Part shown: positions 30,001-61,125 of the stretch, piece after piece
How the letters are laid out: each line of letters starts with the position of its first letter
How positions within the stretch are numbered: position 1 is the first letter of the stretch
From: Mizuhopecten yessoensis
Lineage: Eukaryota
DNA length: 64,000 bases
Reading direction: 5' to 3'
Assembly: GCF_002113885.1 (NCBI RefSeq)
Contig: NW_018407210.1
Span: 11,968 to 75,967 of the forward strand
Made by a program: the position numbers and the translations under genes
The notes under the pieces: generated by a model
The model's database searches: none
Seen by the model: the letters and a program-made list of their open reading frames with translations, nothing else
Told to the model about the DNA's origin: nothing

Positions 30001-30395
30001 ATATGTTAAAAAGAGAAGTTGTCTAAAATCATATTAAAAAAGGAGGAAGTGGCTTAGTGATATTATATTAAAATAAGAGAAACTGGCTGCTGATAGAGAA
30101 AGTTACCTTTCTTAATATTAAATTTTGATTAGAGGGGTTAGTTGATTTACTTATATATGGGCAGTGGCTGACTCCTATTATATTACATTAGGGGACGTTC
30201 ACTGAAATTATACCAAGACAAGAAAATTATGAAAAACCGACAATTTTCTTTAATATGGAGATTTGAAGTTGGTGATAAATTTACAAGTTTTAAGTTTTAA
30301 AAACTTACATACTCTGCACTAGCGGCCCAAACAACTAAAGGCATCAGAAGACACACAAACATCAAATTCGTAAACAGGTCGTACACGTTCGCCAT
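21039..30395 (-). CDS. Cluster gene A: secreted cubilin-NTD-like / putative Ig / EGF / FA58C protein, 366 aa (subfamily I)
   Basis: Exons (minus): 30313-30395 (signal peptide MANVYDLFTNLMFVCLLMPLVVWAASA), 29459-29525 (QVDYPSVIVHAKADGNFTML), 26251-26343 (SGFNGDIKLIPGVNNTGNVYFEGEDLLYLFE), 25751-25852, 24992-25181 (DPEGGQVTYSVVAGDLPPGITLDSTLGQVKG), 23877-23990 (6-Cys EGF), 23357-23521 (WLQVDFG), 22379-22512, 21039-21191 (ARYVRFVP...CMRVELLGC). All GT-AG and open. AATAAA at 20999-21004. Confidence 0.9.
21530..21870 (+). mobile_element. Degenerate Penelope-like retroelement RT C-terminal fragment (in gene A intron 8)
   Basis: Translation RDDFDFQIMNVTFLDRNTPYCLTYGVNILQLIRYPCTCSEYHDFRDRCRLLTDK matches the PLE RT thumb pattern recalled as KRDDFNFxIVNFPFLxSNIPxxPAYGVYISQLIRY. 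Contains an internal ~52-bp tandem duplication. Confidence 0.7.
21978..22150 (+). repeat. Dispersed repeat (gtgtcg..gatgaagcag..gacgcttac.cttc.gga.cacctg family); related copies near 20230-20282, 35405-35450, 40605-40780
   Basis: The same motif is seen four times in the window. Here it lies directly 3' of the PLE RT fragment. Confidence 0.55.
22155..22393 (-). repeat. ~61-bp degenerate tandem repeat (~4 copies) spanning the gene A exon 8 donor site
   Basis: atacttac(c/t/a)ttgggactgacgcc (minus: GGCGTCAGTCCCAAG|gtaagtat) recurs at ~22190, ~22252, ~22311 and ~22372. Confidence 0.8.
26775..27120 (-). mobile_element. Degenerate SINE-like element in gene A intron 2
   Basis: Typical molluscan SINE blocks (ccggtcacatt.ttctgac...aaccagt...aatgctgaac...aactacca.tttaagtctttggtatg) plus a tail shared with the copies at 52290 and 63325. 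Confidence 0.5.
27236..29198. mobile_element. Non-autonomous DNA transposon with 18-bp TIRs and 3-bp AAT TSD (Harbinger/Tourist-like); internal part duplicated across gaps
   Basis: aat|ggtggcagagtacagtag ... ctactgtactctgctacc|aat. 27407-27887 is nearly identical to 28718-29198. Confidence 0.65.
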
Positions 30396-32343: not shown

Positions 32344-35300
32344 ATGGCGGCTATCAAAACAACGTATCTTCTGCTAGTTTTCTTGCCTTATGCGTTTGCA
32401 AGGTAATATACATTTCTTATTTCTTATTTTATTAACTGTTTGTGACATATTCCTTATATGTAAAACAAAACTTCGTTGTTTAAGGAATTATTCTATACAT
32501 TATAGATATGTTGAGTAAATGATGATATAATTTCCGACAGGTCCGGTCAATATTTCACTAAAGGAAACATAACAAATATCGCTTACATTACCTTCTTAAT
32601 TAACCTGTATAACATGCTATAAATTGTGCAAGAATATATTGTAAAACTTGTGTCAACAGAACTCCCAATAGATCGATATTGTCGTCGAGATTAAACACGG
32701 ATCAGTTTAGGTTTATTCTAACCTTAAGTAATGCTGATGAGTATCCTAAATAGAGGAGATGGTTTATTTCCATTTATATTTTCCGACGTTCTCCTCACAT
32801 TTTAACTTTCGTTTAACTTTGCTTTAAAGCTTTTTCGAGATACAGTACCCGAATGTGTTGGTTACGGCTGAGACTGGTGGTAATCTTACCGTAGAGGTAT
32901 GTGTACATCACATAATTACTGCAGTGATAAATAAACATGCTGGTAGAAATAATAATAATTCACATCAAAATATGTTAAGACTATACAGGATTTTTATTTA
33001 ATGTGTCTTTAATGTTATTTACAAGATATAACGGGAAACATTTGTTTGGTTTCAATGCTTGCTACGATTTATGTAATATCGTTTTTTACTTTAATTTCAC
33101 GATTCGCTGGGCACGTCCCTCAGAGCAGCCTCTCTTTCACAGAAAAAATATACTCAGTGAAAGTTTTCATATTACAAGAAGAAAACGGTAACAATTTTCA
33201 TGATCAACTGAACGAGACTTCACCATTCAATAGATGTCTGTATATTCAGTAATAAGTATCAGGTTGATTGATGAAGAGCTATTCAATGCATCACCTTTCT
33301 CAGGCAGGGCCACAAGGCGGAAACGTCATCATGAAACCAACCGGTAATGGCACTGTCTACATTGGTACGACCGACATGCTAAAACTGTTTGAGGTAATTA
33401 ATGTAAAATTGATAACGAATGCATGATAATGTATAGTGTTCGTTATAAATGGCAAATACTGATATAAGTTAATTATCAAGTGACTGGACGATGTGCTCCT
33501 ATTACTTCTTCGTAAAGTTTGTAAGCAATATTTTAAAAGTTATATCAATTTCGCGTAAAGCATAACTATAAATCTCAATAAAATCAAACAAGTACATTAC
33601 TTTAAAATCCATCACAGCAGTAGTTTGAACTATCTTTCTTTTTTTCAGATCGTCAACAGCATGCCACCCGTATGGGAATCGAAGGCCGTTCACGGATCGC
33701 TGGGCACGTTCCTCGGGGGAGTGTCAATTTCACTGAATCTTGAAGCTGTGGTATACCTATAATAGTCCAACAGATCGCTACCCAAGTGAAATTGTTTTGA
33801 CTAGGAATTTATTGTAGTCGTTAAAGAGAACCAAAAGAAAACACTTCTTATGTGAAGATGAATAGCAATATTAAATCAATTCGCAAAACAGAAAATAATC
33901 TTTTTATTATTATTATTAATTTGTATTATATAAATATCTTATCTAATGTAAAATCAAGAAGATTCTTAATTCATGGAAGCATTTAAGGTGTTATATTTTT
34001 TTAATGTAGGACCCCGAAGGAGGTTCACTGAAGTATGAGAAGGTTTCCGGTGCACTGCCGCCTGGTGTCCATCTGAACAAATTGACCGGACAAATTTCCG
34101 GTACAGCACCGGATGTGGATGCTACCTATCAGTTCGGCATCCGGGTTACGGACAAGCACGGGAAATATGCCGACCAAATCTTCTCTATAGACACAAGAGG
34201 TTTGTTCCTGAATAGGAAGAATTTTCGACTGTTTTATTATTGTCATAAATCTTTAGTTTAACATATCTACTGTGTCATCATGCTCCTCACTTTTTTAATG
34301 GTTTTCTGTGTAGTAACATAGATTTCCTACCTTTTATAGTAGAGTGTATTTAGTGTTACTTATTTGCGCGTATTTGGGTTAAGTATTGATTGCAAAATCA
34401 CGTATCAAACGAACAATTAAAACACATTAAGACGTTAACGTTGAGTTACACACAAACTAAATTCATCGCGAATAAGTACAGAAAGATCATATTGCGAAAG
34501 TATGTGTCTGTTAAAATATATAATAAATATATTAGTATTGTACATAAGCACAATACATTAGTATTATGAAATACAACTTAAGTGGTATTATAAATATAAG
34601 CAATCTATTAATGGTATAGATATAAAAAAAAAAAAAAAAAGTTAATATTATTAATTATTGCATTTTAACATTTAAAAGATCGGTTGTATAGTGAACGAAG
34701 TATCTTGTGTTAAAAGGACCACACTTTTTGTTATTTTCCAAAGTAAAACAACCAACCACAGAGCCTTATTTACAGTGGGGGGAAATACAAAGAACAGAAG
34801 TCGTGATCTGAATTGTAACTTCATTTTCAAATAAAACATCTAAGCACAGTACGTTGATGCACGAATGACGGTGGCACATGTTTGTCATTTTGTTCATGTT
34901 ATTGCCATCCTTGATTCTCGATGCATACTACTTATATGTCAACTCATGGGATGAATACTTTCCCTATTTAAAATGCAATTTTCTTTTTACCCTATTCCAT
35001 GAAATATATCTGGTATTCTATAGCACCAAACGAAGCATGATACTGTACTCGCCAACTAATGGTAGATACTTTGTATTCATCACACAATGAAATATAACTT
35101 GCATCAGGAAAAAGTACTCTCTATTCCATTTGTAGACTTTCCTTTTTCCAATTTTTCCGTACACCTGTTAGACAATATTTGTATTTTTTGTTGATAAGGA
35201 CCTTTGTAAACTATTTACGTTGTGTTTTCACACAGAGAAGAACCAGTGCCTCAGTAACCCGTGTAGTCACGGAGGGTCGTGTGTGGACGATATTGACAGT

Positions 35301-36758
35301 TTTGTATGTACTTGTCAGCCACCGTACGGCGGAAAGACGTGTGCTACAAGTAAGTCGACTACCTCTTCTTCATTGAAAATAGGTTATGCTTTGTTTACAT
35401 GGAAGGTGATGTCGATAAAGCGGAAGACGCTTACTCTTCAGGACACCTCCGATATTTGTCTACGTACTTTTTACTTTGTTCATATTTTGTTCTAGTTTTA
35501 TCGATTTTAAGTTCGAATTATGGTTTTGAGAGCATTCAAGTTTTCTCCTTCTCTTACTAAATTTAGAACAACCCAATAAATGATATAATGATCCAGGATA
35601 TAACCTTTGACCTGATCAACTACGATAATGTATACTTTCTGTTCTTCTGTAAGACTGTGAGAACCAGGCGTTTGGGGTGGACCAGGGCAGTAAGAAGATA
35701 CCAGATGCCCGGATGTCTGCTCACTACTCTTATGGGGATCACCCGGCCTCTGACGGGCGTCTGAATGCTCCTCAGGGCTGGATCGGACAGAATACTGCCT
35801 CGTGGCTACAGGTAATACAATTACTTATACATACGGTATTGTTATAGCATATATATCGTTTATGACGATCGTATCTGCTGTTTATTGGGAAAGGTTATGT
35901 AAAGTGTATTTAAAATATCACACGTTTCAAACAGTAGACACCACTGTAAAATTATAAGACCGACGTACTCTTAAGAAAGAGTTAAAATCATTACTCAAAA
36001 TGTACAATAGAATCAACATAAACCTGTTAGGCTGGATATTTAGGTAAATTGATTTCACTTTAATGTTACAGAAATTCTCGCGAAAAACTATTCCTGAATT
36101 TACATATACCATAGGTTTCTGGAGTTAAGTGCATGTCAATCTACATATCAGGTTGACCTCGGTGACGTCATGGATGTGCACGCTGTGGCTACCCAGGGCT
36201 ACACGTCATCGACGTACTATACGTCAGAGTACCAACTGCTGTACAGTTCCGACGGCAATACCTTCGTGAGCACAAAGAATGGAACTGGCAACATGGTATG
36301 TTATCCGCACGTCATTATACGGCTATAATGGCGGTAATGATCTGATAGTGAAGTGTAACGGTCATATCTATACCGCGTTTATAGAATCTGGACAACTGTA
36401 CAAACCATGACTTCAACATGGTCAAGCTAATACATGTACCTTTTGTAAATTTATCATGCAGTGTAGTTATAAACTAATGTTTTTGTTTAATATTAGTTTA
36501 CCACTAACATGTACACGTGACATAAAAGGATATTTCCTGTCTCGTAATTGAATTTATTCTTTCATATACTACCATAATGATTTAGGTTTGATTTCATTGC
36601 AGGTGTATACCGGAAGTACGAACGTGAACACCGTGACGAAGCACGTCCTCACTACTCCCCTGCACGCTCGCTTTATCAGATTCAAGCCAGTCACGTTTAG
36701 CAGCCACCCCGGCATGCGCGTAGAAGTTTACGGATGCCAGATAAATTCTAATCCCTGA
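32344..36758 (+). CDS. Cluster gene B: secreted cubilin-NTD-like / putative Ig / EGF / FA58C protein, 359 aa (subfamily II)
   Basis: Exons: 32344-32402 (MAAIKTTYLLLVFLPYAFA), 32830-32896 (FFEIQYPNVLVTAETGGNLTVE), 33304-33393 (AGPQGGNVIMKPTGNGTVYIGTTDMLKLFE), 33649-33750 (PPVWESKAVHGSLGTFLGG), 34010-34199 (SGALPPGVHLNKLTGQISGTAP), 35236-35349 (EGF), 35654-35811, 36152-36295, 36603-36758 (GMRVEVYGC). AATAAA at 36815. Confidence 0.92.
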
Positions 36759-38300: not shown

Positions 38301-41300
38301 TTAGAGCCAACAGCCATACATCTCCACCTGAAAGCAAGGGTGGTAATGACTTTCGTATGTCTTTGGATGGATCCGGACAAAGCGTGCTTCTAGTGGTTCA
38401 GGCAAAGTCTGGTACTCTGCACTAATTGATCCCATAAACGTCTGTAATCAAACAAACATAACAATGGACTATTGAAATATTGATAGATAAACTAGTGTTC
38501 ATAATCTATGTAAAGTTGGTATGACTAACTGTACTTTTAAAGGATCTGGGGTGATGCACAATTTTATGTAACTATATGTAATATCTCATTATGATTCCGA
38601 AATGCTACAATACATGTGTTTACTGTTTTGAAGTAAATAAATTATATGTAAACGGCCACATAAACATAGTAGGCTCATACAGGACAAAATGGTTAAAATA
38701 TGTAAAACATTTCTGCTATGAGAAACAATGGAAGCATACAAGTTAAAGGGGAATGTGTAGAAAACAAAGTTTTAATTCTAAGTCTGGTAATGAATGCAGA
38801 AGAACATTTTGGTTTCTCCAGTGTCTCCTTAACAGAGGACTCATAGGAACCCCCTTATTCTTTATGGAACCCTATATTGGTTCTCTGATACGATCATATA
38901 GTCGGATACAGGAAACCGGCATCCTCTGAAGTGAATTACATATATAGGGAACGCAAATCCGAAAATGTATATTAAGGTACCTTAAGAGAGATATTGTGTA
39001 ACATTTAAGACATATTCTGTCTGAATAAACATTGTTTATTCGAGAAACCAGGTAAGTAGGTTCCAATGGAAATGGGTAAGGCTTGTTAAGCTTAAAACAA
39101 TTACTAACCTCTATACCGCATGTTAAATTTATCTGGAATAGACCACACCAAATCTGTCTATCAAGCATCGTATACTATTAGTCCTTCCATACAATTTGTG
39201 TTTTGTGTTGTGTGTTCTGTGAGTTAGGAAATGGGGATGTTGAAAGGGGGTAATATTGATAATGAGATTCTAATATTATTGTATATAATTCGGTTTTACT
39301 TACATGCACAATGGTAGTATTCACATCGTTTATGAAGTTAAAGGTGATTCCGTCAGAACTGTGCGACACTGTATACGTTTTGGCGAAGAAGGTGGAATTG
39401 GCCCCAGCTGTCTCTAATCTGAATAGCCTTGCTGTACTGCCTGGTAAATATATCACAAGAAAGCCAATAAAAATGCAATGAACTCATAAACATGTACTAG
39501 ATGTAAAAATATACCAGATATTACAGAGTAACAAATATCCGATGTAACATAGTAAAATAGACATGTATCATCTATCACGTACCAATGTGACTTAAACATG
39601 CCTTTTACCTGTTAAATACGTATCCTTATAATGTTTTTAGGGGAAAGAATGTTTAAGGAATTAGTCATTTTTTGGCAGGAACTCCGTACAAAATGATAAA
39701 CAAATAAAGTGTTTTGACATCGCGATCTTTTAATTGCTACAGCACAATGTAATTAATTCAACATACAAGACGGTAAAAATAAATTGCAATTGCTGGTATT
39801 CACTTTAACCTTACTGCTGATTATTACCTGTTACCTTAACACATATATACAGTAAGATAACTGAGGATACCTAGGTCCACTTGTAACCAGGAGTTGGCGT
39901 TTTCACCACACCAATGATTTCCATTTTCTAACAGACGTCCGTCTGATGCTTTTGATACATATCGAGATAAGTAGGCTGACAGCTGAGCATCAGGGATCAC
40001 TGAGGGCTTGGCTACTCCAAGGGCAGTCGTTTTACAAGCTAGTCAAAGTAGAAACAAAAACAAAATAAATAGTTGTATTGAAAGTCATTCCCTCGAATAT
40101 ACAGAGGTACATGAAATTTTATAAGAATGAAATATACAATCGAAATGTTTAAATATGCGTTTTTCTTGCTTTGTATTTTGAGACAGGTTTTTTTGACGTC
40201 ATGTAATAAAAAAAAAGGATGACAAAACAACAGCATCAATAGCAATGGACTAAGACTGTTATTAACTGATAGGGGTGCGAGGTATGTATACTTACTGACG
40301 TCACATGTCGGTCCCCCATACTCGATCGGACAGGTACAGGTATATCCTCGCTGAGTGTTGGTGTTGTTACACTGACCATTGTTGTGACACATCTCTCTGA
40401 CACACTGATCGATCTCTGGGTTAACAACAGATATAGAGGGTTATGATCGCCATCATCATCCCACAGGAAAGTAAACGTTTTCCTTGTGTTATATGATGCA
40501 CGTTATTTTTTATTATGATCATTAATGTGCAGTGTGGACTTGTTGTCACATCTCTTATTCTCAGTTAGAGGACCTGGTATTACTTGAATTTGACCTAGAT
40601 TTTCATGGCAAGTGTCGGCGATGAAGCAGAGGACGCGTACCCTTCCGAAACACCTGGACTTATTGCCCTGTTACTTTTTCAGGGCGGTATATGTTTATTT
40701 TTCCTCTCTTCACATTTTGCCCTATTTTTATCGATTTTGTGTTGAAATTATGATTTTTTTAACATTTCGGTATTTTCTTGTTGAGACTTGCACGAGAAAT
40801 GGATTGTCCCGGGTTGCTTCACTAATGAAAGCATGCTTTCTTTTGAGTGGAATTTTATGTGTTTATGCTCAGAATATATACAACAATGCCAATACATCTT
40901 GATTGATAAAAGAAGGTTAAATACCTATTGTCTCTATTTTGAAAACTGCATCAGCGTACTTATCGCTTGCATCAGTTGCACGGATGGTGAACGTGTAAAT
41001 AGCGTCTTCATCCAGAGCAACGCCTAGGATTCTCCATGGATGTTTGACGATATTTACTCCAACGGGAAAATCTCCAGCAACAAGTTCAAATCTGACATCC
41101 TGATTTTCGGGATCCTGCATCCATACAATCAGAAGAAAAACATATCTTTATGGTTCGAAGTTTGTTTTCCGTAAATATGCAAATAACAGAAGTACATATT
41201 TACAAGCAGAACCGCTGCAATGGACATGACTGGCTATTCCATACACCCCTATAAAGGGACCAACCGACATTGAAACCTCAGGATGAAGTTAAAAAAAACA

Positions 41301-43115
41301 CGGTTCAATAACAAACGTGCACAACTATTTCGGAAAAGGACATTTTCTCAGATGTTGTTACATCTCTCACATATTGTTACATTTCTCACATATTGTTACA
41401 TTTCTCACATATTGTTACATTTCAAACTATTGAATAAGTTTTTCAAAATGTTTTTTTACACAAGTGGAAAAAATAGTTTATAGTCATATTAATGTTCATT
41501 ACCAGCACTTCCAGGGGAATTTCTATGTCAGATCCACCCTCAAATGTCCCAGAGTAGCCGACATGTCCATGTAAACGCCAGATCGGCGGCATACTGTTGA
41601 TAATCTAAACACCAAACAAGCTAATGAAGTGATTGTTTTAAACAAAATTTGAAAACATCAAACACGGGTCATTTCGATAGGTAACCTCATCTATATGGCA
41701 AAGGGATATACAAGCTACACCATACTGTACTACAAATCACCTCCAATGCCATCTGGGAAAATAACTTTCGGGTATTGTTTTGACTAATAAAACCCTATCC
41801 ATATCAAATCAATTGTCACTTGCATGTCCTTAAAAGGGATACAGAGTTGAGCGGAGTTGATAATGATAACCGTCGTGCATATATAGATGTGAAATATATG
41901 ATAACATATGTTTTACTAAAATCATTAACGCTGAAACATTGTAACCATGGCAATGTAAACAACGTTACAGCTGGATTAGTATACTTCACAGTTAGTTTTG
42001 CAGTAAGGATGCTAAATATCAGCCATACGTACGTCAATAATCTCCAGTAGATCGTAGCCATCAAATAGTATGGTCCCTGAACCGTTCCTAGTCGGCTGGA
42101 TGTAGATATCACCATTCTGTCCTGACTAGGACGTAAAAGTAAAGACATGTTTTTAATGTTCATCGTAATGTGTCATGCCATATCGCATTCTGATATGTGA
42201 AATAAAACAAAAGTTGTCATTGTAATCAATGTAAAAGATGCAGGACTACGAATGTAGTCATGCACTCTACTAACGTACAGTGTAGATAACTTAATTAGGA
42301 AATATGTTTATATAGTTACAACTGTAACTACATTTAACTATTTGTTATATATATTTGTATGATCTTTGTATCGAAAGATGAAATAATAGTAAACTATCTA
42401 GTGAAAATCCCGAATCTCATAACAGTGGCGAAGTTAAACTGCGGCGTCATCTATAACTGTGACGTCACAGTCACTGTTTAAAAAATTAATGTCATGAGAC
42501 ATGAATACCAGGTGGTTGTCTTTTCACTTGTACATTGTTTTCATACAAAGTGATTTTAGAGAAAAACAGCACATATTGGCCTTATCAAAACGTTGGTGAT
42601 AGTGATAACATGTAAAGAAAGGACAAATACATCATGCAAAATCCCTGTCTGTAAAGAAAACACATTTACCGGTAATAGTACAGTATACATGTATTATCAC
42701 TGGTTCAGGAGTGCCCTTACCTGTCCCAACAGTGTTCCATTGTCCTGGGCAGCTACTGCCACATTCGGGTAGTCCAACTGTAACACACTATACAAAAACC
42801 CAAATTGACTACTAATTATACAAATGAAACCCTTTTACTTCAGAGAACATCGAATATAATGTTTCATCGGCATGTTTTATTGTTAAAGTATAAAAAAGAA
42901 TTTTCAAATGTTAGAAAATTGAATTCATCGGTTCATTTGTAATTCCGTATGACGTCATTTCCGCCAAGAATATTTCTTTTGCCAACGTCACTTTAATGAG
43001 TTTGAATTAAATACAAAACCTAAATAGAAACTACTTACTCGCCTGGAGATCCTGCTGTAGCCAATGAAATAACTACACATAGGAATATGGATATAATTCC
43101 AATATACAATGCCAT
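38301..43115 (-). CDS. Cluster gene C: secreted cubilin-NTD-like / putative Ig / EGF / FA58C protein, 364 aa (subfamily I)
   Basis: Exons (minus): 43039-43115 (MALYIGIISIFLCVVISLATAG), 42721-42787 (LQLDYPNVAVAAQDNGTLLGQ), 42033-42125 (SGQNGDIYIQPTRNGSGTILFDGYDLLEIID), 41503-41604, 40925-41114, 40296-40415 (EGF), 39871-40038, 39304-39440, 38301-38441 (PCFQVEMYGCWL*). Confidence 0.9.
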
Positions 43116-46635: not shown

Positions 46636-46963
46636 TAGCCTAAGTCAAACAGTCGTTCCCTGTGTCCCAGAGGTGTACATATGTAACCTATTCATACATT
46701 ATATTTTTATGTTAATGAATAAGCACACATTGAATTCCACCTTGAAACAGAACTCAAATTTATTCAGAAGCAGGCTTTTCAATATTTGAGTACATTAAGC
46801 TCCTCTGACATTTAAACTGACTCAAGGAAATTCAATCTTTCGAACAATTCTCTCAATAATGCTGCAGGGAATATATAATTAACCTAGGCTTCTAGGTGGT
46901 TTAGAGAGAGATCGTTACAAGTTTTGCACACATTTCATGTGATCTCGAAAGAGGTTCAATGTC

Positions 46964-47739
46964 ATTCATGTGTGCATGCTATACCATGACATTGAACTTC
47001 TTTGTTATTCATGTGTGCATGCTATACCATGACATTGAACTTCTTTGTTATTCATGTGTGTATGCTATACCATGACATTGAACTTCTTTGTTATTCATGT
47101 GTGCATGCTATACCATGACATTGAACTTCTTTGTTATTCATGTGTGCATGCTATACCATGACATTGAACTTCTTTGTTATTCATGTGTGCATGCTATACC
47201 ATGACATTGAACTTCTTTGTTATTCATGTGTGCATGCTATACCATGACATTGAACTTCTTTGTTATTCATGTGTGCATGCTATACCATGACATTGAACTT
47301 CTTTGTTATTCATGTGTGCATGCTATACCATGACATTGAACTTCTTTGTTATTCATGTGTGCATGCTATACCATGACATTGAACTTCTTTGTTATTCATG
47401 TGTGCATGCTATACCATGACATTGAACTTCTTTGTTATTCATGTGTGCATGCTATACCATGACATTGAACTTCTTTGTTATTCATGTGTGCATGCTATAC
47501 CATGACATTGAACTTCTTTGTTATTCATGTGTGCATGCTATACCATGACATTGAACTTCTTTGTTATTCATGTGTGCATGCTATACCATGACATTGAACT
47601 TCTTTGTTATTCATGTGTGCATGCTATACCATGACATTGAACTTCTTTGTTATTCATGTGTGCATGCTATACCATGACATTGAACTTCTTTGTTATTCAT
47701 GTGTGCATGCTATACCATGACATTGAACTTCTTTGTTAT
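46964..47739. repeat. 43-bp homogeneous minisatellite (~18 copies)
   Basis: Unit ttattcatgtgtgcatgctataccatgacattgaacttctttg. Confidence 0.95.
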
Positions 47740-47802
47740 TTCAAAGCAGTAGTTAAAATAGATAACATAGGACTAAAAGGACAAATTCAGAGAAGATTTG
47801 TT

Positions 47803-50800
47803 TTAATTCAAACTGAGTACTCTACACCCAATCAGCTCCACTTTGAAACAGGGCCGGACGACGAATGTGTTTGGATGGAACCGGACAAATCTTGCGTTCA
47901 CTGGCACGTTTAGCGTGTGAACTGTAGATGAGGTTGAGTAGCTCGCGGAGAAGATCTGAAAAAAATAGACAGTATTGAATGTTCTATGTCAACTGACGAC
48001 ATAGTGTTGGCACAAGGAAGAACAAACGAAAGACGTAATTTGAGATTTTCTCAGACAAATTATCATTGTTTTTTTATTAATTAATTAATAGATTATAACC
48101 ATAAATATGTACAGAATCGATCCTTTTGTAACTAAACAAATAACCAATGTTAGAATTATTGCTGAGCTAGTGAATAACGTTTGTAAGCAAGCCATGCTGG
48201 AACACCTTTCTATCGATATGATCATGTTAACAGTCAGTTGTATCTAATTAGATAATTACATTACATTAAACTAGCCAAGGTTCTTGTACCATCCATATGT
48301 TTCCTTTATTGTCGTTATCATCATTGATTTAACATGACTTTTTATTAACTACAATTAGTGGCCGTCAGTACTGACGCTTTCTGCTCCGTTGACAGGGTCA
48401 ACCTGATAGAACGTGTTGCCGTCAGTACTTACGCTTCCTGCTCCGTTGACAGGGTCAACCTTATAGAACGTGTTTCCGTCAGTGCTATACGACATACTGT
48501 AGGTCTTGGTGTACTGGTGTGAGGAGTAACCTTGTGTCTCAACCCTGTAGATCTTAGTCACATGACCTGCACAACAAATAAGTACAATAGAGTCTGTCAT
48601 ATTACATCTTATGTCTATTTTACCTTTTTTTCTCGTAAATAAACTTTGTCTCGCGTACTACTTTTTTCTTGTGAACATGTTTGGTTCTGTGAACTAGCTT
48701 TGTCATGTTTATTAGCTATGTCACTCAAACCAGTCTTGTTAAAAAATTGGTTTGTTAACTACATGTAGCTTTGTCTTGTCAACTAGCTATTTTGCCCAAA
48801 CTAGCTTTGTCTTGTTAACTTGCTTTGTCATCAAAACTATTTTTGTCTCTTGTCAATTCGTTCCATGATTTCTATTTTATGTAAGACTGAGTATAAAATG
48901 TTTTCTCTAAATACAATTTCTATAACTGTCTTACAAGCGTCAGTATCCTTTGTTGAAAATGCTTTGAGTGATCGGTATCACACAAATGAAATACACTGTG
49001 TGTTGGATATGAAATTTTGACATGACTACTAGCTTTTGAGTCGTAACAGAGGCCGGATCACGAATCCTTCACCAAAAGGTGGACTATCTATCCCCTGACG
49101 GTTGTTTATATACAAACGACACCCAAAAGGTTGACTATCTATCCCCTGATGGTTGTATATATACAAACGACACCCAAAAGGTTGACTATCTATCCCCTGA
49201 CGGTTGTATATATACAAACGACACCCAAAAGGTTGACTATCTATCCCCTGACGGTTGTATATATACAAACGACACCCAAAAGGTGGACTATCTATCCCCT
49301 GATGGTTGTATATATACAAACGACACCCAAAAGGTGGACTATCTATCCCCTGATGGTTGTATATATACAAACGACACCCAAAAGGTGGACTATCTATCCC
49401 CTGATGGTTGTATATATACAAACGACACCCAAAAGGTGGACTATCTATCCCCTGATGGTTGTATATATACAAACGACACCCAAAAGGTGGACTATCTATC
49501 CCCTGATGGTTGTATATATACAAACGACACCCAAAAGGTGGACTATCTATCCCCTGATGGTTGTATATATACAAACGACACCCAAAAGGTGGACTATCTA
49601 TCCCCTGATGGTTGTATATATACAAACGACACCCAAAAGGTGGACTATCTATCCCCTGATGGTTGTATATATACAAACGACACCCAAAAGGTGGACTATC
49701 TATCCCCTGATGGTTGTATATATACAAACGACACCCAAAAGGTGGACTATCTATCCCCTGATGGTTGTATATATACAAACGACACCCAAAAGGTGGACTA
49801 TCTATCCCCTGATGGTTGTATATATACAAACGACACCCAAAAGGTGGACTATCTATCCCCTGATGGTTGTATATATACAAACGACACCCAAAAGGTGGAC
49901 TATCTATCCCCTGATGGTTGTATATATACAAACGACACCCAAAAGGTGGACTATCTATCCCCTGATGGTTGTATATATACAAACGACACCCAAAAGGTGG
50001 ACTATCTATCCCCTGATGGTTGTATATATACAAACGACACCCAAAAGGTGGACTATCTATCCCCTGATGGTTGTATATATACAAACGACACCCAAAAGGT
50101 GGACTATCTATCCCCTGATGGTTGTATATATACAAACGACACCCAAAAGGTGGACTATCTATCCCCTGATGGTTGTATATATACAAACGACACCCAAAAG
50201 GTGGACTATCTATCCCCTGATGGTTGTATATATACAAACGACACCCAAAAGGTGGACTATCTATCCCCTGATGGTTGTATATATACAAACGACACCCAAA
50301 AGGTGGACTATCTATCCCCTGATGGTTGTATATATACAAACGACACCCAAAAGGTGGACTATCTATCCCCTGATGGTTGTATATATACAAACGACACCCA
50401 AAAGGTGGACTATCTATCCCCTGATGGTTGTATATATACAAACGACACCCAAAAGGTGGACTATCTATCCCCTGATGGTTGTATATATACAAACGACACC
50501 CAAAAGGTGGACTATCTATCCCCTGATGGTTGTATATATACAAACGACACCCAAAAGGTGGACTATCTATCCCCTGATGGTTGTATATATACAAACGACA
50601 CCCAAAAGGTGGACTATCTATCCCCTGATGGTTGTATATATACAAACGACACCCAAAAGGTGGACTATCTATCCCCTGATGGTTGTATATATACAAACGA
50701 CACCCAAAAGGTGGACTATCTATCCCCTGACGGTTGTATATATACAAACGACACCCAAAAGGTTGACTATCTATCCCCTGATGGTTGTATATATACAAAC

Positions 50801-53800
50801 GACACCCAAAAGGTGGACTATCTATCCCCTGATGGTTGTATATATACAAACGACACCCAAAAGGTTGACTATCTATCCCCTGATGGTTGTATATATACAA
50901 ACGACACCCAAAAGGTGGACTATCTATACCCTGATGGTTGTATATATACAAACGACACCCAAAAGGTTGACTATCTATCCCCTGATGGTTGTATATATAC
51001 AAACGACACCCAAAAGATTTTCTTCGGCGGATGAATACCGTCTAAGTCGATTTAATTGTCTATTTTTTTAACGTTTTGTCAGTTGATCATGAAACTTGTG
51101 TCATTTACTAGTATCTGTTGTGACGTCATTTGATCCGAATGCCTAATAAAAGAATTGATAACAATAGGTTATTAATTATTTAGCAAATAACAAGAGCAGT
51201 AGTGACGATGGACTGGTCTAAGCTTAGAACATTTGAAGTGATTCTGTAAATTACATTGTTCCGTGATAGGTTAGTTTCTCTGGCCTCTATGTTTGCGGAT
51301 TAAAACGATAAAGTAAAGTTTGCATTATTGAAAAACGTTATAAATCTTCGAGTGTTAGTTGGTCTTTACAGAAAATATTGTGCAACAAAATTATATATTT
51401 CACAATTACTCATTGGAATCTTAAAAATGTCTAGTGAAAGGTCACTCTATAACTTTTATAAAAATCATTCAGGATAATAGGATCTCCATTATACGGTAAG
51501 ATAACAAATTACATTCCTACCCAGATCGACTTGTAGCCAAGAATCTGTACTCGTACCACACCACCCATAGCCACTAGCCCCATATCGACCATTGGAGGCA
51601 AGATAGCTACTGTAGGAACGAAAGGCGGTCATCTGGGCGTCCGGGATCACACTTGGACTGCGTATATTTATAACTTTGCTTCTGCACGCTGTAATGTAAC
51701 AGTTTATAAAAAATAGAGTTTGATTTAGTATTTCTAGAGATCATTTGGTAATATGGTTTATACAAAGAACAGTTCTCGTTACTTTTTGTGAGAAACAATT
51801 TACATACACACTTTGAAAAAACTTGATAAAATAGCTGATTTCATTTTCTTCAAGTAAAGTATTTTATTTCTTAGATAAACAATTGTATCTATGGTTCTTA
51901 GGATTTTCTAATAAAAAAAAAGACTCAACTTATCTATCTATGTAATGAGATAATGAAATTTATTATTAACGCTATTCCATTCTATCATGAAATGAAATGA
52001 ATGAGAACATCGCATGAAAACAGAACGACGGACTGCCGCCACTAGTGTCTCTGTAGCCGAGAATGGACTAGAGTCCAGCCACAAGATTGATGTGTCGATT
52101 GTGTCCATCTCCGACATCAGACAAGATCTAGGTATCAAACTATGTATACACACCAGACGACACAGGGGAACCTAAACAAAAATGAGAAGGGGTTTCTCCT
52201 ATCTAAGGCAGGCTCTTGCGTTTGTTACGCCACTCATGTGCAGGAAAATAGCAAGGTCACTTAGGGTCTACTAGCGTGATAAAGATGGTTTAGTTTGACT
52301 CGGTTTGTTGGTGTTTTACGTCCTATTAATAGCTATGGTTATTTAAGGACGCGACAGGTTTTGGTATTGGATGTAAGCCGGAGTACCAGGAGAAAATAGA
52401 CCGTTCTGCGGTTAGTACCTAGCAACTGCCAAACGTAGGCCTAGAACCAGCGTCCAAGTGGTTAAGGGCTAGTGATCGCAGACGCCTTAACCACTTGGCC
52501 TTCGCGGCCCCGTAGCCATCAAAAGATCTCTGGTAAGCTAAGTGTTATGTTGTGACTAAATGATTGAAGTTCAACACTTCAATAAAAAATCTGATTTAAT
52601 ACAAAAAACTTGAAAAGGTTACCTGTTTCACACTTCTGACCGCCGTAGTCAGTTGTACAGTTACAGGTAAACCCTCCCGTCGTGTCTGTACACTGTCCAT
52701 TATGTAGACACGGGCTGGAGGAGCAGTGGTCAAACTCTGAAAATGACCATTGGGTCAACAAACCAATCTAGTTATTTCTTGTGTATCATCTGCGCAATCA
52801 CCTCTAAAGCATTGACTAATTTATCAGATCTTAGGGTAAAGAATCCCATTATTCTCTTCCTAAATTATTAAGGTTCACTTGCAAGTTTGAATAAATATTT
52901 CACATTCTTCGATATCTATTCATTTTGGATAATCGACATGAAAAATGACCACAAAAAAAATTCAATAATATACCTAAAGTTTCCATCTTAAACACAGAAT
53001 CTGCATATTTCCCATGTGTGTCTTGTGCCCGGATAGTGAATGAGTAACTTCCTGTCACGTCAGGAATGACGCCTTTCACATGCCCGGAAGTGACATCAAG
53101 GGTGATACCCGGCGGAAGAGCCCCGGCCACAATCTCAAATGTGATATGCTCTCCTTCCGGATCCTATCAATAAAATGTAAATAATTATCATTAAACCATT
53201 GATTTCAAATATGTTAACCTCATTATGATATACCTTTGTAGACAGGTTATTCAGTACTTCGGGGAAGGACGTACTAGTTTGTACTACAGTATGCTACCGA
53301 TTATATGAATACAAGAATAAGAACTCTCACCTCCGCTTCCAACTTGATGTCAACATTTTCATCGCCTTTAAAGGTACCAAAGAATCCGTTATGAGCATGA
53401 TTTGACCATACTGGAGGGAGACTTTTCGCAATCTGAAACAGAATATATTAAGCAAACATATCTGGTGAACATTTAAAAATTAACGATCCTTGGATACGAC
53501 TTTTATATAGTTACCGACAAAAAGTAAAAATTAAATATAAGTGAACTGGCTACGCCCTTCAGGTTAATATCAATACAACCTCCAGGTAATTATGAAACAC
53601 CCTTTAGGTAACCATGGATACGACCTACAGGTAACTATGTTATACGACTTACAGGTAACTAGGGATACAGCCTACACGTAACTACGGTATACTACTTACA
53701 GTTTACCAGAGATACGACCTTCACGTAACTATTGTATACGACTAACAGGTAACCAGGGACACGACCTTCCCGTAACTATAGTATACGACTTACAGGTAAA

Positions 53801-55811
53801 CATGGATACGACCTAAAGGTAACTATGGTATACGACTTACAGATAACTAGGGTTACAGCATACACGTAACTACGGTATACTACTTACAGTTTACCAGAGA
53901 TACGACCTTCACGTAACTATTGCATACGACTAACAGGTAACCAGGGACACGACCTTCCCGTAACTATAGTATACGACTTACAGGTAAACATGGATACGAC
54001 CTACATGTAATTATGGTATACGACTTACAGTTTACCAGAGATACGACCTACATGTAACTATGATATACGACTTACAGGTAACCAGGGACACGACCTACAC
54101 GTAACTATGATATACGACTAACAGGTAACCAGGGACACGACTTACACGTAACTATGGTATACGACTTACAGGTAACCAGTAAAACGACCTACACGTAACT
54201 ATGGTATACGACTAACAGGTAACCAGGAATACGACCTACATGTAACTATGATATACGACTTACAGGTAACCAGGGACACGACCTACACGTAACTATGATA
54301 TACGACTTACAGGTAACCAGGGACACGACCTTCACGTAACTATGGTATACGACTAACAGGTAACCAGGGATACGACCTACACGTAACTATGATATACGAC
54401 TTACAGGTACCCAGGGACACGCCCTTCACGTAACTATGGTATACGACTTACAGTTTACCAGAGATACGACCTACATGTAACTATGATATACGACTTACAG
54501 GTACCCAGGGACACGCCCTTCACGTAACTATGGTATACGACTAACAGGTAACCAGTAAAACGACCTACACGTAACTATGGTATACGACTTACAGGTAACC
54601 AGGGACACGACCTACACGTAACTATGGTATACGACTTACAGTTTACCAGAGATACGACCTACACGTAACTATGGTATACGACTAACAGGTAACCAGGGAC
54701 ACGACCTACACGTAACTATGGTATACAACTTACAGGTAAACATGGATACGACCTACATGTAACGATGATATACGACTTACAGGTAACCAGGGACACGACC
54801 TACACGTAACCATGGTATACGACTTACAGGTAACCAGGGACACGACCTACACGTAACTATGGTATACGACTTACAGGTAACCAGGGACACGACCTACATG
54901 TAACCATGGTATACGACTTACAGGTAACCAGGAAAACGACCTACAGGTAACTATGGTATACAACTTAAAGGTAACCAGGGATACGACCTACACGTAACTA
55001 TTAATATGATGTACAGGTTATTATATATACGACCTTCAGGTTATATCTACGTTGGAAAGTATGTAAATCCTCATAAACCCCCAAAGTCGATCAGTACCTC
55101 TAGGATGCTGAGCAGGTCCTCGCCCTCAAAATAGACCATTCCATCAGTCGATCCGGGTAGAATGTACAGATCGCGGGTCGCATCTCCCGACTGTTGAAAT
55201 TAGTGACATTGTTATCATAACTCTGTAGCATTTATGTACTTATTTCTGAATAAATATCTATGTGACTTTAAAAACATTGAAACAATGCTTAATGATTGCA
55301 AAGTCGTTTTATCAACTGGATTTTATTATCATAATGTTTAAAGTTGTATGATAAATAAAGAAATTAATAATCAAAACGTTTTCAAAAGGGGTGTAGCATA
55401 AATGAATATGATATTGTATTTACCTGTAACGAAATGTTACCGTTACTCTGAGCAGCCACAATTACATTGGGAAATCTGATATCGAAAACTCTGAAACATG
55501 GCATAGAAAAAAGTAGCAAATCAATCACAGGTACAGAATAAGAACATCAAGGAAATATTTTATTAATTAATTATCAGGAACATAACATAGTAAATTCATA
55601 TTAGGTTTATACTCGTTCATATATAGAGGGAAAGAAAAACATCTGGGTTAAAACAGAACGCAATACTATTTATTACGCATATACTCGACACACCAAATTC
55701 TGCTATGGAGATTTTGTCATGCAAACTGAATTTCAAAGGTACGTATACATACCCGTCGTCTGCTGCTATGGGTGAAGCTGGAATTAGGAGCAGAATGATA
55801 AATTGGATCAT
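47803..55811 (-). CDS. Cluster gene D: secreted cubilin-NTD-like / putative Ig / EGF / FA58C protein, 359 aa (subfamily I)
   Basis: Exons (minus): 55753-55811 (MIQFIILLLIPASPIAADD), 55424-55490 (FDIRFPNVIVAAQSNGNISLQ), 55098-55190 (SGDATRDLYILPGSTDGMVYFEGEDLLSILE), 53331-53432, 52974-53163 (AGALPPGITLDVTSGHVKG), 52623-52736 (EGF), 51521-51688, 48433-48566 (alternative donor at 48376), 47803-47955 (PCFKVELIGC). Confidence 0.9.
49070..51015. repeat. 51-bp highly homogeneous minisatellite (~38 copies) in gene D intron 7
   Basis: Unit caaaaggtggactatctatcccctgatggttgtatatatacaaacgacacc, with no spacers. Confidence 0.97.
52290..52512 (-). mobile_element. V-domain-like tRNA SINE copy; related copies at 58355-58435 and 63325-63540
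   Basis: Shares ttttacgtcctattaa...ggt.a.ttaaggacg...gccggagtacc.ggagaaa and a tRNA-like minus-strand head (ggggccgcga.ggccaagtggttaaggcg). ggaaaccggagtacccggagaaaaccc is V-domain-like. Confidence 0.6.
53545..55040. repeat. 47-bp higher-order (23+24 bp) degenerate minisatellite in gene D intron 3
   Basis: Alternating subunits tacgacttacaggtaaccaggga / cacgacctacacgtaactatggta. Confidence 0.9.
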
Positions 55812-56142: not shown

Positions 56143-59100
56143 ATGGCGGCACTGTTTGTGATTTTCATTATATTGCCAGCTATAGTTACAGCCAGGTAAG
56201 TCAATAGAATCACTTAATATTGAAGATATCGCGTTGTCCCTGATATATGTTTGTTATTCCCTCCTAATTTTACGTTTTTTTATTTTACAGTTTCTTCCAG
56301 GTAGATTATCCAAATGTAAACATATCTTCAGAACCGAATGGAGATCTTGTCTTTGAGGTAAATTCGTTTTCTTGTTTCTAAATTCAGTTTTGGTTTTATT
56401 TTTGGTCCGCATTCATCAAAACCTTTATCATTGATGATGTTCAAAATAATGTTCACTGGACGTGTTTTATAATATAAGATCGTACTTTATAAATCTTATG
56501 TTATTAGAAGACTTGGGGCACTTATTCTAAACGTGTAACTGAGTACCATTCCCAATTTCTAGTTCCTGGTTGAAGACAATTGGCGAAATACGGGGGAAAA
56601 TAAATAATTAGAGAAATGGATTTGTTGAAGCTGGATTTTTTTTTCTTTTTTACAATTCATGTTGGCATTGCTGACTTGTATCTTTTATTTTCTATATTGT
56701 TTAAAAAATTAATAATTAAATGTAAAAGAAAATGGTAATTTCTAAATTATGTGTTTTTGCATTACCCAAAACACGAGCATGTGTATGGGTTCTGCATAGT
56801 AAATGATATGTCATGAAAATCAATTATGCATTTGCTTGTTAAGTACGTTGGGGTCTGTAAATGTAGGCTGGCCAAGGTGGAGATGTCATCTTAAAACCAG
56901 GCGTTGGAGGAACAGTCTACATCGCTGGCACAGATTTGAGGAAATTCATTCAGGTGAGTGGTCCTATCACTTCATAGAGTAATATTATTATCATCTACCG
57001 TTATTGTTAACGCTGGGGGTCTTAATGACGATCGTATATGACAGATGTTCCTAGCAGTCACAAATAATGGTGCTATTCCTCTTGTGCTATTGTGACAGTG
57101 TATTGTGTTTTACAACAGGTAATAACAAATAAATGAGTTACTGAAAAGATCAAATATGTTTTGCTTATATTTTAAACTTCAATATGAAATTAAAGAAACA
57201 TAATGAGAAAATGATTGTCATCATTGAGTTATTCTGTGGTGACTTGTTGAGTAAAATAAACGATATCGATGTTTCAGAAAGTAAAGAGTCTGCCCCCTAT
57301 CTGGACCAGGCAGTCGGTTCATGGATCTTTGGGTACATTCAACTCCGGGAAAGCTGTATCGGTAGCAGTGCAGGCAAGGGTATGAGTTTACAGTTTATGA
57401 CTTTACGGGAAGCACACCTCACAAATATATTTTTTAATTGAATATCAAACCTCAGGAACAGAAGATTAACATAGACAGTTAATGCAAAACAAACAGAGTA
57501 ATAAACGTATATTTACCGTCAGTTTAAGCACATCTTTTGGAGTAATATTTCACAGCATTATGCATTCAAATAGTTTGATAATTTAAAAAATATATTATTC
57601 AAAACAGGACCCAGATGGACAAAGCATTGTGTACGAACTAGTCGCGGGTCACCTCCCTCCCGGCACTACCTTAAATAACTCTACTGGTGTGATATCCGGC
57701 ACTGCTCCCGACGTGGACGCCACCTACCACTTTGAAATTCGCGCCACTGACGTTCACGGGAAATATGCTGACGGGTCATTCAGTATCAACATCCGGGGTG
57801 CGATTCAGATATATGATGTTAATAATTTGATTAACTTCATAGTTTCATTAATTGATTAAAAAATGTTAAATAGCATTTTCACTACATACACTTTCATGTA
57901 ATCCAAATCTGCAAACATAATTATATTCAATGTTCTGCTGTCATAATCAGCTATGTAGTATTTTATCGTTGTAAAAGTATGTTGTCTTATTGGCGTCAAT
58001 GGATGGAGGATTCCTGAATGCTCTTAATGTTTAAGATAGAACATTTAATTATCATTGTTTTGACTTTCTTAAAGAACAAGACCAATGTAAGAGCAATCCC
58101 TGTGAGAATGGTGGAACATGCTCAGACAACCTGAACAAATTCACCTGTAGCTGTACCAAGGGTTATGGTGGAGAGAGGTGTCAAACAAGTGAGTTATCTC
58201 CCTTTTTAACTCTGTATTAAAGGTTCAATAATTCCGTTTTTTATGTGTATCATGTTTGCTATCCATTAAATATAAACTTTGTTTATTTAACAACAATTAC
58301 GAAACAAGTCAATTAACTTATTTTAATCAATCTTGTTGGCCCGGATGGTAGCGCGCTGGGGGTCTTAATGTGGGAGGAAACCGGAGTACCCGGAGAAAAC
58401 CCAGGTGGTCGAGCAGGTGAACCCACACCTTTCCATAGCATTTGTTTAGTATCCAGTAAACTGTATTTATGTAATTATTCAGGGTGCTCCCAGAACACCT
58501 TCGGAGTGGATCAGAATGTTAAACACATCCCCGACGCCCAGTTGTCAGCTCACCTAACCTACACCACTTATAAAGCACAGAATGGCCGACTCCACTCAAC
58601 TACGGGCTGGATAGGAAATGGGACCGGGTCCTACTTACAGGTATGGTATATACTTTTGAAAGGAGAGAGTAACACGAGTAGAAAATAATTTTAGACTTTC
58701 GTCGTAAGCTCAAAAGATGCATGGTAAAAAGGTAGAGGGAGCTATACGGGTTAAGACAATTGTTAAAATGTAACTCCCGGCTAAAATATCAAACAAACAA
58801 CAATACAAACGCAAGATGATTAAGTTAGGTTTTAAAAATGAAATCCTTTAAATTTATATAAATTCTGGGGAAATTTCTTGTTCGATATATACAAAAATGA
58901 GGAAAATGATGAAAAAATGAAAAGCAAACGGTACGTCCTTAATACAGCAAGCAATGTTATCATACCATTGTTATGTTTTTAGTATCACAATGTTTATGTT
59001 AAAGAATTAGACAATTATATTCACGATTTAAGTATAACTGTATGTTTAAGGTGGACCTCGGAAACGTGTCGACGGTGTACGGTGTGGCCACACAGGGTTA

Positions 59101-59924
59101 CAGATCCTCCACCTACTACACTCTCACCTACACAGTCACCTACAGTCAAGACGGCAACACGTTCACGACCGCAACTGACGCCGTCGGGAATAGCAAGGTG
59201 AGTCCTATGTCATATTTTGCAAAAGATCATTTCAATGTGACATCTAAATAATCAAAATAGCCTTAATGCGACAGGAATTGTATGTAACACAGTCCTGTCC
59301 GATGAAGGTAGACGATTCAGAGGAAGCTTGAGAATACATTGGATTAGGCTCTGTTATGTTCATTGTACCCTGGTGCAATTGAAGACGAAATTGAAGACTT
59401 TGTGCGCTCCATGTTATAGATGATAAAGGTAGAGTTGTTTGATCATTTGCTGCAATTCAAGAAAATCGTCCGACATAGTAACGGTAAAATTTACCGGCTT
59501 TGAAGTTGGTTGTCGCTTCTCTGTAATCTTAAAACGAATGTATCAGCCTAGCGATTAGTTTTTTTTTAAATTACTAACATCGTGCCTTCGATTTTGTTAT
59601 GACATATTCAAGAGGTGCAGAATCGTGGAATTTCGGGAATGAATTAGAGGTAGCTCTAGAATAATCAATATCGTCTTATAATTGCAAATTGGTCGAAGTC
59701 TACCGATAACTAATGGAATCAATGTAACGGATCAAAGATATTGTTTATGTGTACATATTACTTTTGTTTTATTTTAGACGTTTAGTGGGAGTTCGAGCTA
59801 CGACACGGTGATAAAACACGACTTGGTGAAGCCGGTACAGGCCAGATTTGTCCGCTTCCTGCCAACACTGTGGCATACCGGAGGACAGCCCGGACTCAGA
59901 GTGGAAGTATATGGCTGCAACTAA
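56143..59924 (+). CDS. Cluster gene E: secreted cubilin-NTD-like / putative Ig / EGF / FA58C protein, 354 aa (subfamily II)
   Basis: Exons: 56143-56195 (MAALFVIFIILPAIVTA), 56291-56357 (FFQVDYPNVNISSEPNGDLVFE), 56867-56953 (AGQGGDVILKPGVGGTVYIAGTDLRKFIQ), 57278-57379, 57608-57797 (AGHLPPGTTLNNSTGVISGTAP), 58075-58188 (EGF), 58483-58640, 59051-59197, 59778-59924 (GLRVEVYGCN*). AATAAA at 59941. Confidence 0.92.
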
Positions 59925-60111: not shown

Positions 60112-61125
60112 AATCATGTTGTTTTGTATGGTTCATGTTGTCGTTTTGATGGTTTATGTTGTCTTTTTGATGGTTTATGTTGTCTTTTTAGGGTTTATGT
60201 TGTCTTTTTAGGGTATATGTTGTCTTTTTGATGGTATATGTTGTCTTTTTAATGGTTTATGTTGTCTTTTTAGGGTTTATGTTGTCTTTTTAGGGTTTAT
60301 GGTGTCTTTTTCGGGTTTATATTGTCTTTTTGATGGTAAATGTTGTCTTTTTAGGGTTTATGTTGTCTTTTTGATGGTTTATGTTGTCTTTTTAGGGTTT
60401 ATGTTGTCTTTTTGATGGTTTATGTTGTCTTTTAGGGTTTATGTTTTCTTTTTAGGGTTTATGTTGTCTTTTTAGGGTTTATGTTGTCTTTTTGATGGTT
60501 TATGTTGTCTTTTTAGGGTTTATGTTGTCTTTTTAGGGTCTATGTTGTCTTTTTGATGGTTCATGTTGCCTTTTTAGGGTTTATGTTGTCTTTTTGATGG
60601 GATATGTTGTCTTTTTAGGGTTTATGTTGTCTTTTTAAGGTTTATGTTGTCTTTTTAGGGTTTATGTTGTCTTTTTGATGGTTGATGTTGTCTTTTAGGG
60701 TTTATGTTGTCTTTTTAGGGTTTATGTTGTCTTTTTGATGGTTTATGTTGTCTTTTAGGGTTTATGTTGTCTTTTTAGGGTTTATGTTGTCTTTTTGATG
60801 GTTTATGTTGTCTTTTTGGGGTTTATGTTGTCTTTTTGATGGGATATGTTGTCTTTTTAGGGTTGATGTTGTCTTTTTAGGGTTTATGTTGTCTTTTTAG
60901 GGTTTATGTTGTCTTTTTGATGGTAAATGTTGTATTTTAAGGGTTTATGTTGTCTTTTTAGGGTGTATGTTGTCTTTTTCGGGTTTATGTTGTCTTTTTG
61001 ATGGTTCATGTTGTCTTTTTAGGGTTGATGTTGTCTTTTTGATGGGATATGTTGTCTTTTTAGGGTTTATGTTGTCTTTTTAGGGTTTATGTTGTCTTTT
61101 TGATGGTTTATGTTGTCTTCGTGAT
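60112..61125. repeat. 20-22-bp minisatellite (tttatgttgtctttttagggt / ...tttttgatgg variants)
   Basis: Direct reading. Confidence 0.93.

Follow-up and report, generated by a model that had tools for sequence, protein, structure and literature searches.

A bivalve gene family that combines a remote cubilin-type N-terminal segment with a phage-type Ig domain and a discoidin domain

Introduction

Cubilin, the receptor for vitamin B12, is a 460-kDa protein with 8 EGF and 27 CUB domains. Behind its signal peptide and furin site it carries an N-terminal segment in which strands are followed by a helix (6GJE; PMC6283879). Three chains intertwine into a beta-helix, a long coiled coil follows, and the segment docks on the membrane protein amnionless via residues 42-49, with Met44 (Ile in scallop cubilin) as the hydrophobic centre. 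The same structural study compares the fold with the tailspikes of phages and with type VI spikes (PMC6283879). In Drosophila, Cubilin and Cubilin2 form a heterotrimer, which is a precedent for paralogous chains in one amnionless-bound trimer (PMC8710305).

Lactadherin (MFG-E8) and EDIL3 are secreted proteins with an RGD-bearing EGF part followed by two F5/8C discoidin domains. He_PIG proteins of Pelagibacter phages and further aquatic phages (e.g., HTVC104P gp66) have an Ig domain but no signal peptide, EGF domain or introns, and their other neighbouring domains are different from those described below. Here we analysed a window of 64,000 nucleotides, the whole stretch of the Mizuhopecten yessoensis contig to which positions refer, and describe a gene family for which no published study was found in a literature search.

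Results

Structure and product of gene E

Gene E has nine exons with GT-AG ends (56143-59924) and a single open frame of 354 codons, as follows:

56143-56195, + strand, exon 1: carries the start codon, encodes the signal peptide (residues 1-17) and ends at a phase-2 donor; identical to P0287
56291-56357, + strand, exon 2: N-terminal segment (NTD) residues 18-40, with the extra N-terminal hydrophobic strand, invariant Pro25, the first hairpin with Gly35, and the Asn28 sequon
56867-56953, + strand, exon 3: NTD residues 41-69, comprising two strands bounded by Gly and then a short helix that starts at Asp63-Leu64
57278-57379, + strand, exon 4: last residues of the helix, followed by the beginning of a phage-type Ig domain (PPxW motif)
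57608-57797, + strand, exon 5: remainder of the He_PIG (PF05345) Ig domain
58075-58188, + strand, exon 6: EGF domain (PF00008)
58483-58640, 59051-59197 and 59778-59924, + strand, exons 7-9: F5/8 type C discoidin domain and stop

The model is letter for letter XP_021359382 (P0287) of M. yessoensis, named lactadherin-like by NCBI. The protein consists of a signal peptide, the NTD of about 55 aa, a He_PIG Ig domain (residues 88-165; 49.8 bits against the Pfam cut-off of 24), an EGF domain (171-201) and an F5/8C discoidin domain (234-350), whereas no Pfam match was obtained for residues 18-75. The signal peptide was the sole hydrophobic segment and no membrane anchor was found; the product is probably secreted, without an anchor. 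NTD exons 2 and 3, on which the preliminary description was centred, are real, with GT-AG ends, in frame with exons 1 and 4-9 and identical to the database protein. The peptide that it had quoted from gene E was confirmed as residues 24-72, reaching 3 residues into exon 4, and the Pro/Gly strand pattern that it had claimed for paralogs A-D was found in all four.

The automatic NCBI names (lactadherin/MFG-E8, EDIL3) reflect domain content only. Secretion and the order of EGF then discoidin are shared with these proteins, but the bivalve proteins have one discoidin domain, no RGD was seen in the 9 proteins checked, and the NTD and He_PIG domain are absent from the lactadherin scheme. Neuropilin b domains (best) and factor VIII C domains were the closest solved relatives of the discoidin domain.

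Paralogs, family range and transcripts

Gene E has five tandem paralogs, four of which lie in the window:

47806-55811, - strand, paralog D (P0281): NTD exons 55424-55489 and 55098-55190; head-to-head with E
38304-43115, - strand, paralog C (P0301): NTD exons near 42721-42789 and 42033-42125
32344-36749 (ends approximate), + strand, paralog B: located by means of the Ylistrum ortholog P0306; NTD exons 32828-32896 and 33304-33393
21042-30395, - strand, paralog A (P0291): NTD exons near 29459-29524 and 26251-26343; head-to-head with B

A sixth copy, paralog F, lies on the same contig but outside the window (C3883, about 77000-94400), and no seventh was found in the 988-Mb scallop genome. The NTD exons of F look intact, yet the NCBI protein P0282 (288 aa) begins downstream of them, so this annotation looks truncated. 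The start codons of D and E are 331 bp apart (55811 - / 56143 +) in scallop; the two genes are also head-to-head in Pacific oyster, at a distance of about 235 bp (L024, about 2329 - / 2564 +). A and B start at 30395 and about 32344, respectively.

Some repeats were observed in the same region. In paralogs A and D, the 3' terminal part of exon 8, including the splice donor, is copied in tandem within the next intron (A, 22186-22393, 61 bp x3.4; D, 48361-48491, 57 bp x2.3). Large tandem arrays occur at 49072-51016, 53606-55001, 46960-47740, 60116-61119 and 10163-11790, with periods of 51, 47, 43, 20 and 35 bp. The 51-bp array lies inside an intron of gene D, is 99% homogeneous and produces artefactual reading frames about 650 codons long on each strand.

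A profile of exon 4 retrieved 41 proteins; the named ones were all bivalve (scallops, oysters, Mya, Ruditapes, Dreissena and Mactra), and Mytilus and Mercenaria were present among the cluster members of these proteins. The matching ESM Atlas cluster was entirely molluscan (58/58), and no orthologs outside molluscs were found in a homolog search of limited depth. In the search for full-length proteins, two exon alignments received an unrelated sequence as their first row (in alignment A6 a phage-like protein, in A7 an open frame from a satellite), and this shifted the length range that the homolog search covered. Stable subfamilies in the tree were E (scallops, oyster, mussel and clams), B and D/F (scallops and oysters), A (scallops and clams) and C (scallops). 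The NTD was the best-conserved part within E orthologs (scallop compared with oyster and mussel: 84%, while the discoidin domain reached 63-65%), whereas it was the most diverged part between paralogs (33-51%). Its conservation in E orthologs and divergence between paralogs, together with the head-to-head order of D and E, would fit proteins with a constant partner, which may be a receptor or the other member of the pair.

Oyster orthologs appeared as intron-less contigs in many sequencing runs, indicating that the spliced product is real in oyster. In runs guessed to be RNA, the fraction of E-region words that was present lay at 0.11-0.40; exons account for about 0.27 of that region. In four oyster annotations (P0278, P0284, P0338 and P0339), a D-type gene is fused to a Ufm1-specific protease (PF07910). 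This is probably a joined neighbour gene; no gene for the protease was found in the scallop stretches examined.

Cubilin resemblance of the NTD

P25, G35, G42, G55 and D63 were invariant across 23 bivalve proteins, with alternating hydrophobic positions in between. The extra strand F19-Y24 was bulky hydrophobic at four columns (83-100%), and an N-glycosylation sequon was present in the first hairpin in 8 of the 9 proteins checked. The predicted monomer (AlphaFold, pLDDT 72) had five short strands followed by a helix, the same order as in the cubilin NTD, and several strands carried hydrophobic residues on both faces.

The NTD profile (A9) was built from 23 database proteins. Against PDB (177,635 sequences), its best single-stretch match was cubilin (6GJE_B) over 41 ungapped columns, with a marginal E-value of 0.015. 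As a yardstick, the true scallop cubilin NTD exon reached no better than E 0.005 in PDB, and its sole match was 6GJE. For an independent test, scallop cubilin was found by its CUB cluster on contig C3435, and the 100 kb upstream were scanned with A9. The cubilin NTD exon scored 21.8 bits while the next match scored 7.4; none of 5000 shuffles reached 21.8 bits (maximum 11.3), and the reversed sequence gave 1.9. The hhalign comparison of A9 with the scallop cubilin NTD gave 88.8%, and identity to E was 32% over 37 columns. Upstream of this exon (130 nt) is one that encodes the signal peptide and a furin site, and downstream are the EGF exons; the gene spans C3435 478787-646000 (EGF exons from about 506000, CUB cluster 518000-646000). 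No Pfam model matched it; CDD has a curated cubilin-NTD model. Human cubilin was seen in PDB alignment output only and was never a query.

The cubilin N-terminus as quoted in the preliminary description agrees with the 6GJE residues of the PDB alignments, and the likeness that it proposed was upheld by both profile tests. At the sequence level, these two independent tests support a significant but remote similarity of the NTD to the beta-helix segment of cubilin. On this similarity, a three-chain beta-helix appears to be the likeliest fold of the NTD. Fold searches with the predicted monomer did not find cubilin and gave no clear match. However, this says little because the cubilin chain is intertwined in the crystal. 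Placement after the signal peptide, an EGF domain downstream and about 40 ungapped residues spanning three strands and the helix start are shared with cubilin (6GJE; PMC6283879). The coiled coil of cubilin, in contrast, which the preliminary description had included in the compared segment, has no match in the family: the helix has only about 11 residues (about 63-73), and an invariant Pro-Pro then opens the Ig domain. In addition, the family has no furin site but an extra N-terminal hydrophobic strand, and gene E encodes 354 aa with one Ig, one EGF and one discoidin domain and no CUB domain.

Phage links of the Ig domain and the NTD

Residues 76-165 of E matched Pelagibacter phage proteins with up to 46.7% identity (E 3e-12); for HTVC104P gp66 and its like, the PxW...GxLG motif and 47% over 90 residues are shared, whereas these phage proteins have no NTD. 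The bivalve Ig profile reached up to 77.6 bits on environmental proteins but did not exceed 12.4 bits on the other He_PIG matches fetched from scallop. Of three contigs checked, one has a Peptidase_S74 gene, and phage genes (T4-type tail sheath stabiliser, terminase) were identified on the two others. The top viral structure match of the Ig domain was a Pelagibacter phage protein, and the best solved structure was weak. In the Ig tree, which contained no domains of other eukaryotes, the bivalve domains formed one clade within these sequences and the backbone showed no clear branching order. Judged by sequence, the Ig domain is far closer to phage proteins than to the scallop's other He_PIG matches, which is new here, and it was probably acquired from phage by horizontal transfer. 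The bivalve family thus combines a remote cubilin-type NTD with a phage-type Ig domain.

A beta repeat of aquatic phages (Gly-Asn/Asp-Ile-x-Leu-x-Pro-Asn-Gly-Thr-Gly) was very common in long proteins (L081-L160); in cultured phages, it matched PA5oct-like jumbo phage proteins only. It shares with the bivalve NTD the motif around Pro51, which is near-invariant in the family and which the human and scallop cubilin NTDs lack. In 80 viral loci chosen on the motif Gly-Asp-Ile-x-Leu-x-Pro, and thus biased in favour of the repeat, the NTD profile gave 9-12 bits for most copies and 20.2 and 15.2 for the best. The hhalign comparison gave 76% over 30 columns, not including the helix. By these scores cubilin is the better match of the NTD, though the margin is not wide. 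Both leads would point to a three-chain beta-helix.

Discussion

We lean towards a secreted trimer, held together by a cubilin-type beta-helix with a self-capped base, whose three Ig-EGF-discoidin arms would bind a surface multivalently. The NTDs of three chains would intertwine into a short beta-helix, closed by the helical neck of about 11 residues that displays the three arms, and the base of the helix would be capped by the family's own extra N-terminal strand. With such self-capping, amnionless would not be needed. The arms may bind membranes, glycans or particles, and paralogs may form mixed trimers. Against this reading stand the marginal PDB E-value, the monomer models without a structural match to cubilin and the 20.2 bits reached by a motif-chosen phage repeat. 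Moreover, the intron positions do not match those of cubilin.

It is possible but doubtful that NTD trimers, perhaps heterotrimers, dock on amnionless as alternative cubam-like receptor subunits. The scallop genome has an amnionless gene (C5558 3223-7604, three exons above the Pfam cut-off), the family proteins have no anchor of their own, and, as in cubilin, the mature chain begins with the NTD. A beta-helix with open ends requires capping or a binding partner (PMC6283879), and the strong, ortholog-specific conservation of the NTD would fit a fixed partner. The Drosophila heterotrimers of cubilin paralogs on amnionless also speak for docking (PMC8710305); both Drosophila chains are CUB-domain cubilins, and the bivalve arms are unrelated to CUB. 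However, the scallop genome retains an ordinary cubilin. Furthermore, in the ungapped register, the family column equivalent to Met44 is polar (bulky hydrophobic in 4%), and the Pro-to-Gly spacing is 10 in the bivalve family against 7 in cubilin. A hairpin loop longer by one residue would place the conserved Ile/Val29 at the Met44 position and so rescue the register; the mismatch at Met44 is therefore not decisive. The docking end of the NTD also differs from that of cubilin in the hydrophobic strand (residues 19-24) and the glycosylation sequons (8/9), both of which argue against docking there and, for the strand, are consistent with the self-capped trimer that we favour.

Another explanation, which we consider improbable, is that a phage fibre-type protein was the source of the NTD as well as of the Ig domain, and that the NTD trimerises like a phage beta-helix, so that its likeness to cubilin is one of fold only. 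The adjoining Ig domain is phage-like, the Pro51 motif occurs in the aquatic-phage repeat and not in the two cubilin NTDs, and the hhalign value of 76% fits such an origin. However, even the motif-selected set mostly stayed at 9-12 bits against 21.8 for cubilin, the match stops before the helix, and none of the fetched phage proteins had the motif directly before this type of Ig domain. Likewise, two NTDs used as tblastn queries gave no match under E 6 among 50,697 phage records. Finally, that the NTD is a small monomeric beta-meander, resembling cubilin by chance among Gly-rich strand repeats, is very unlikely: the AlphaFold monomer fold and the weak matches of designed propeller repeats to the profile (6-7 bits per stretch) would agree with it, but the two cubilin matches are independent, one of them at a place fixed beforehand, and several strands are hydrophobic on both faces.

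The self-capped trimer remains the reading that we favour, with paralogous chains as candidate partners. A more far-reaching view, which at present seems unlikely, is that bivalves possess a second set of amnionless subunits, in which a docking beta-helix derived from cubilin is joined to an Ig spacer of phage origin and to a discoidin domain as ligand head. If this were true, heterotrimers of the paralogs would turn the cubam of these filter feeders into a modular receptor platform.
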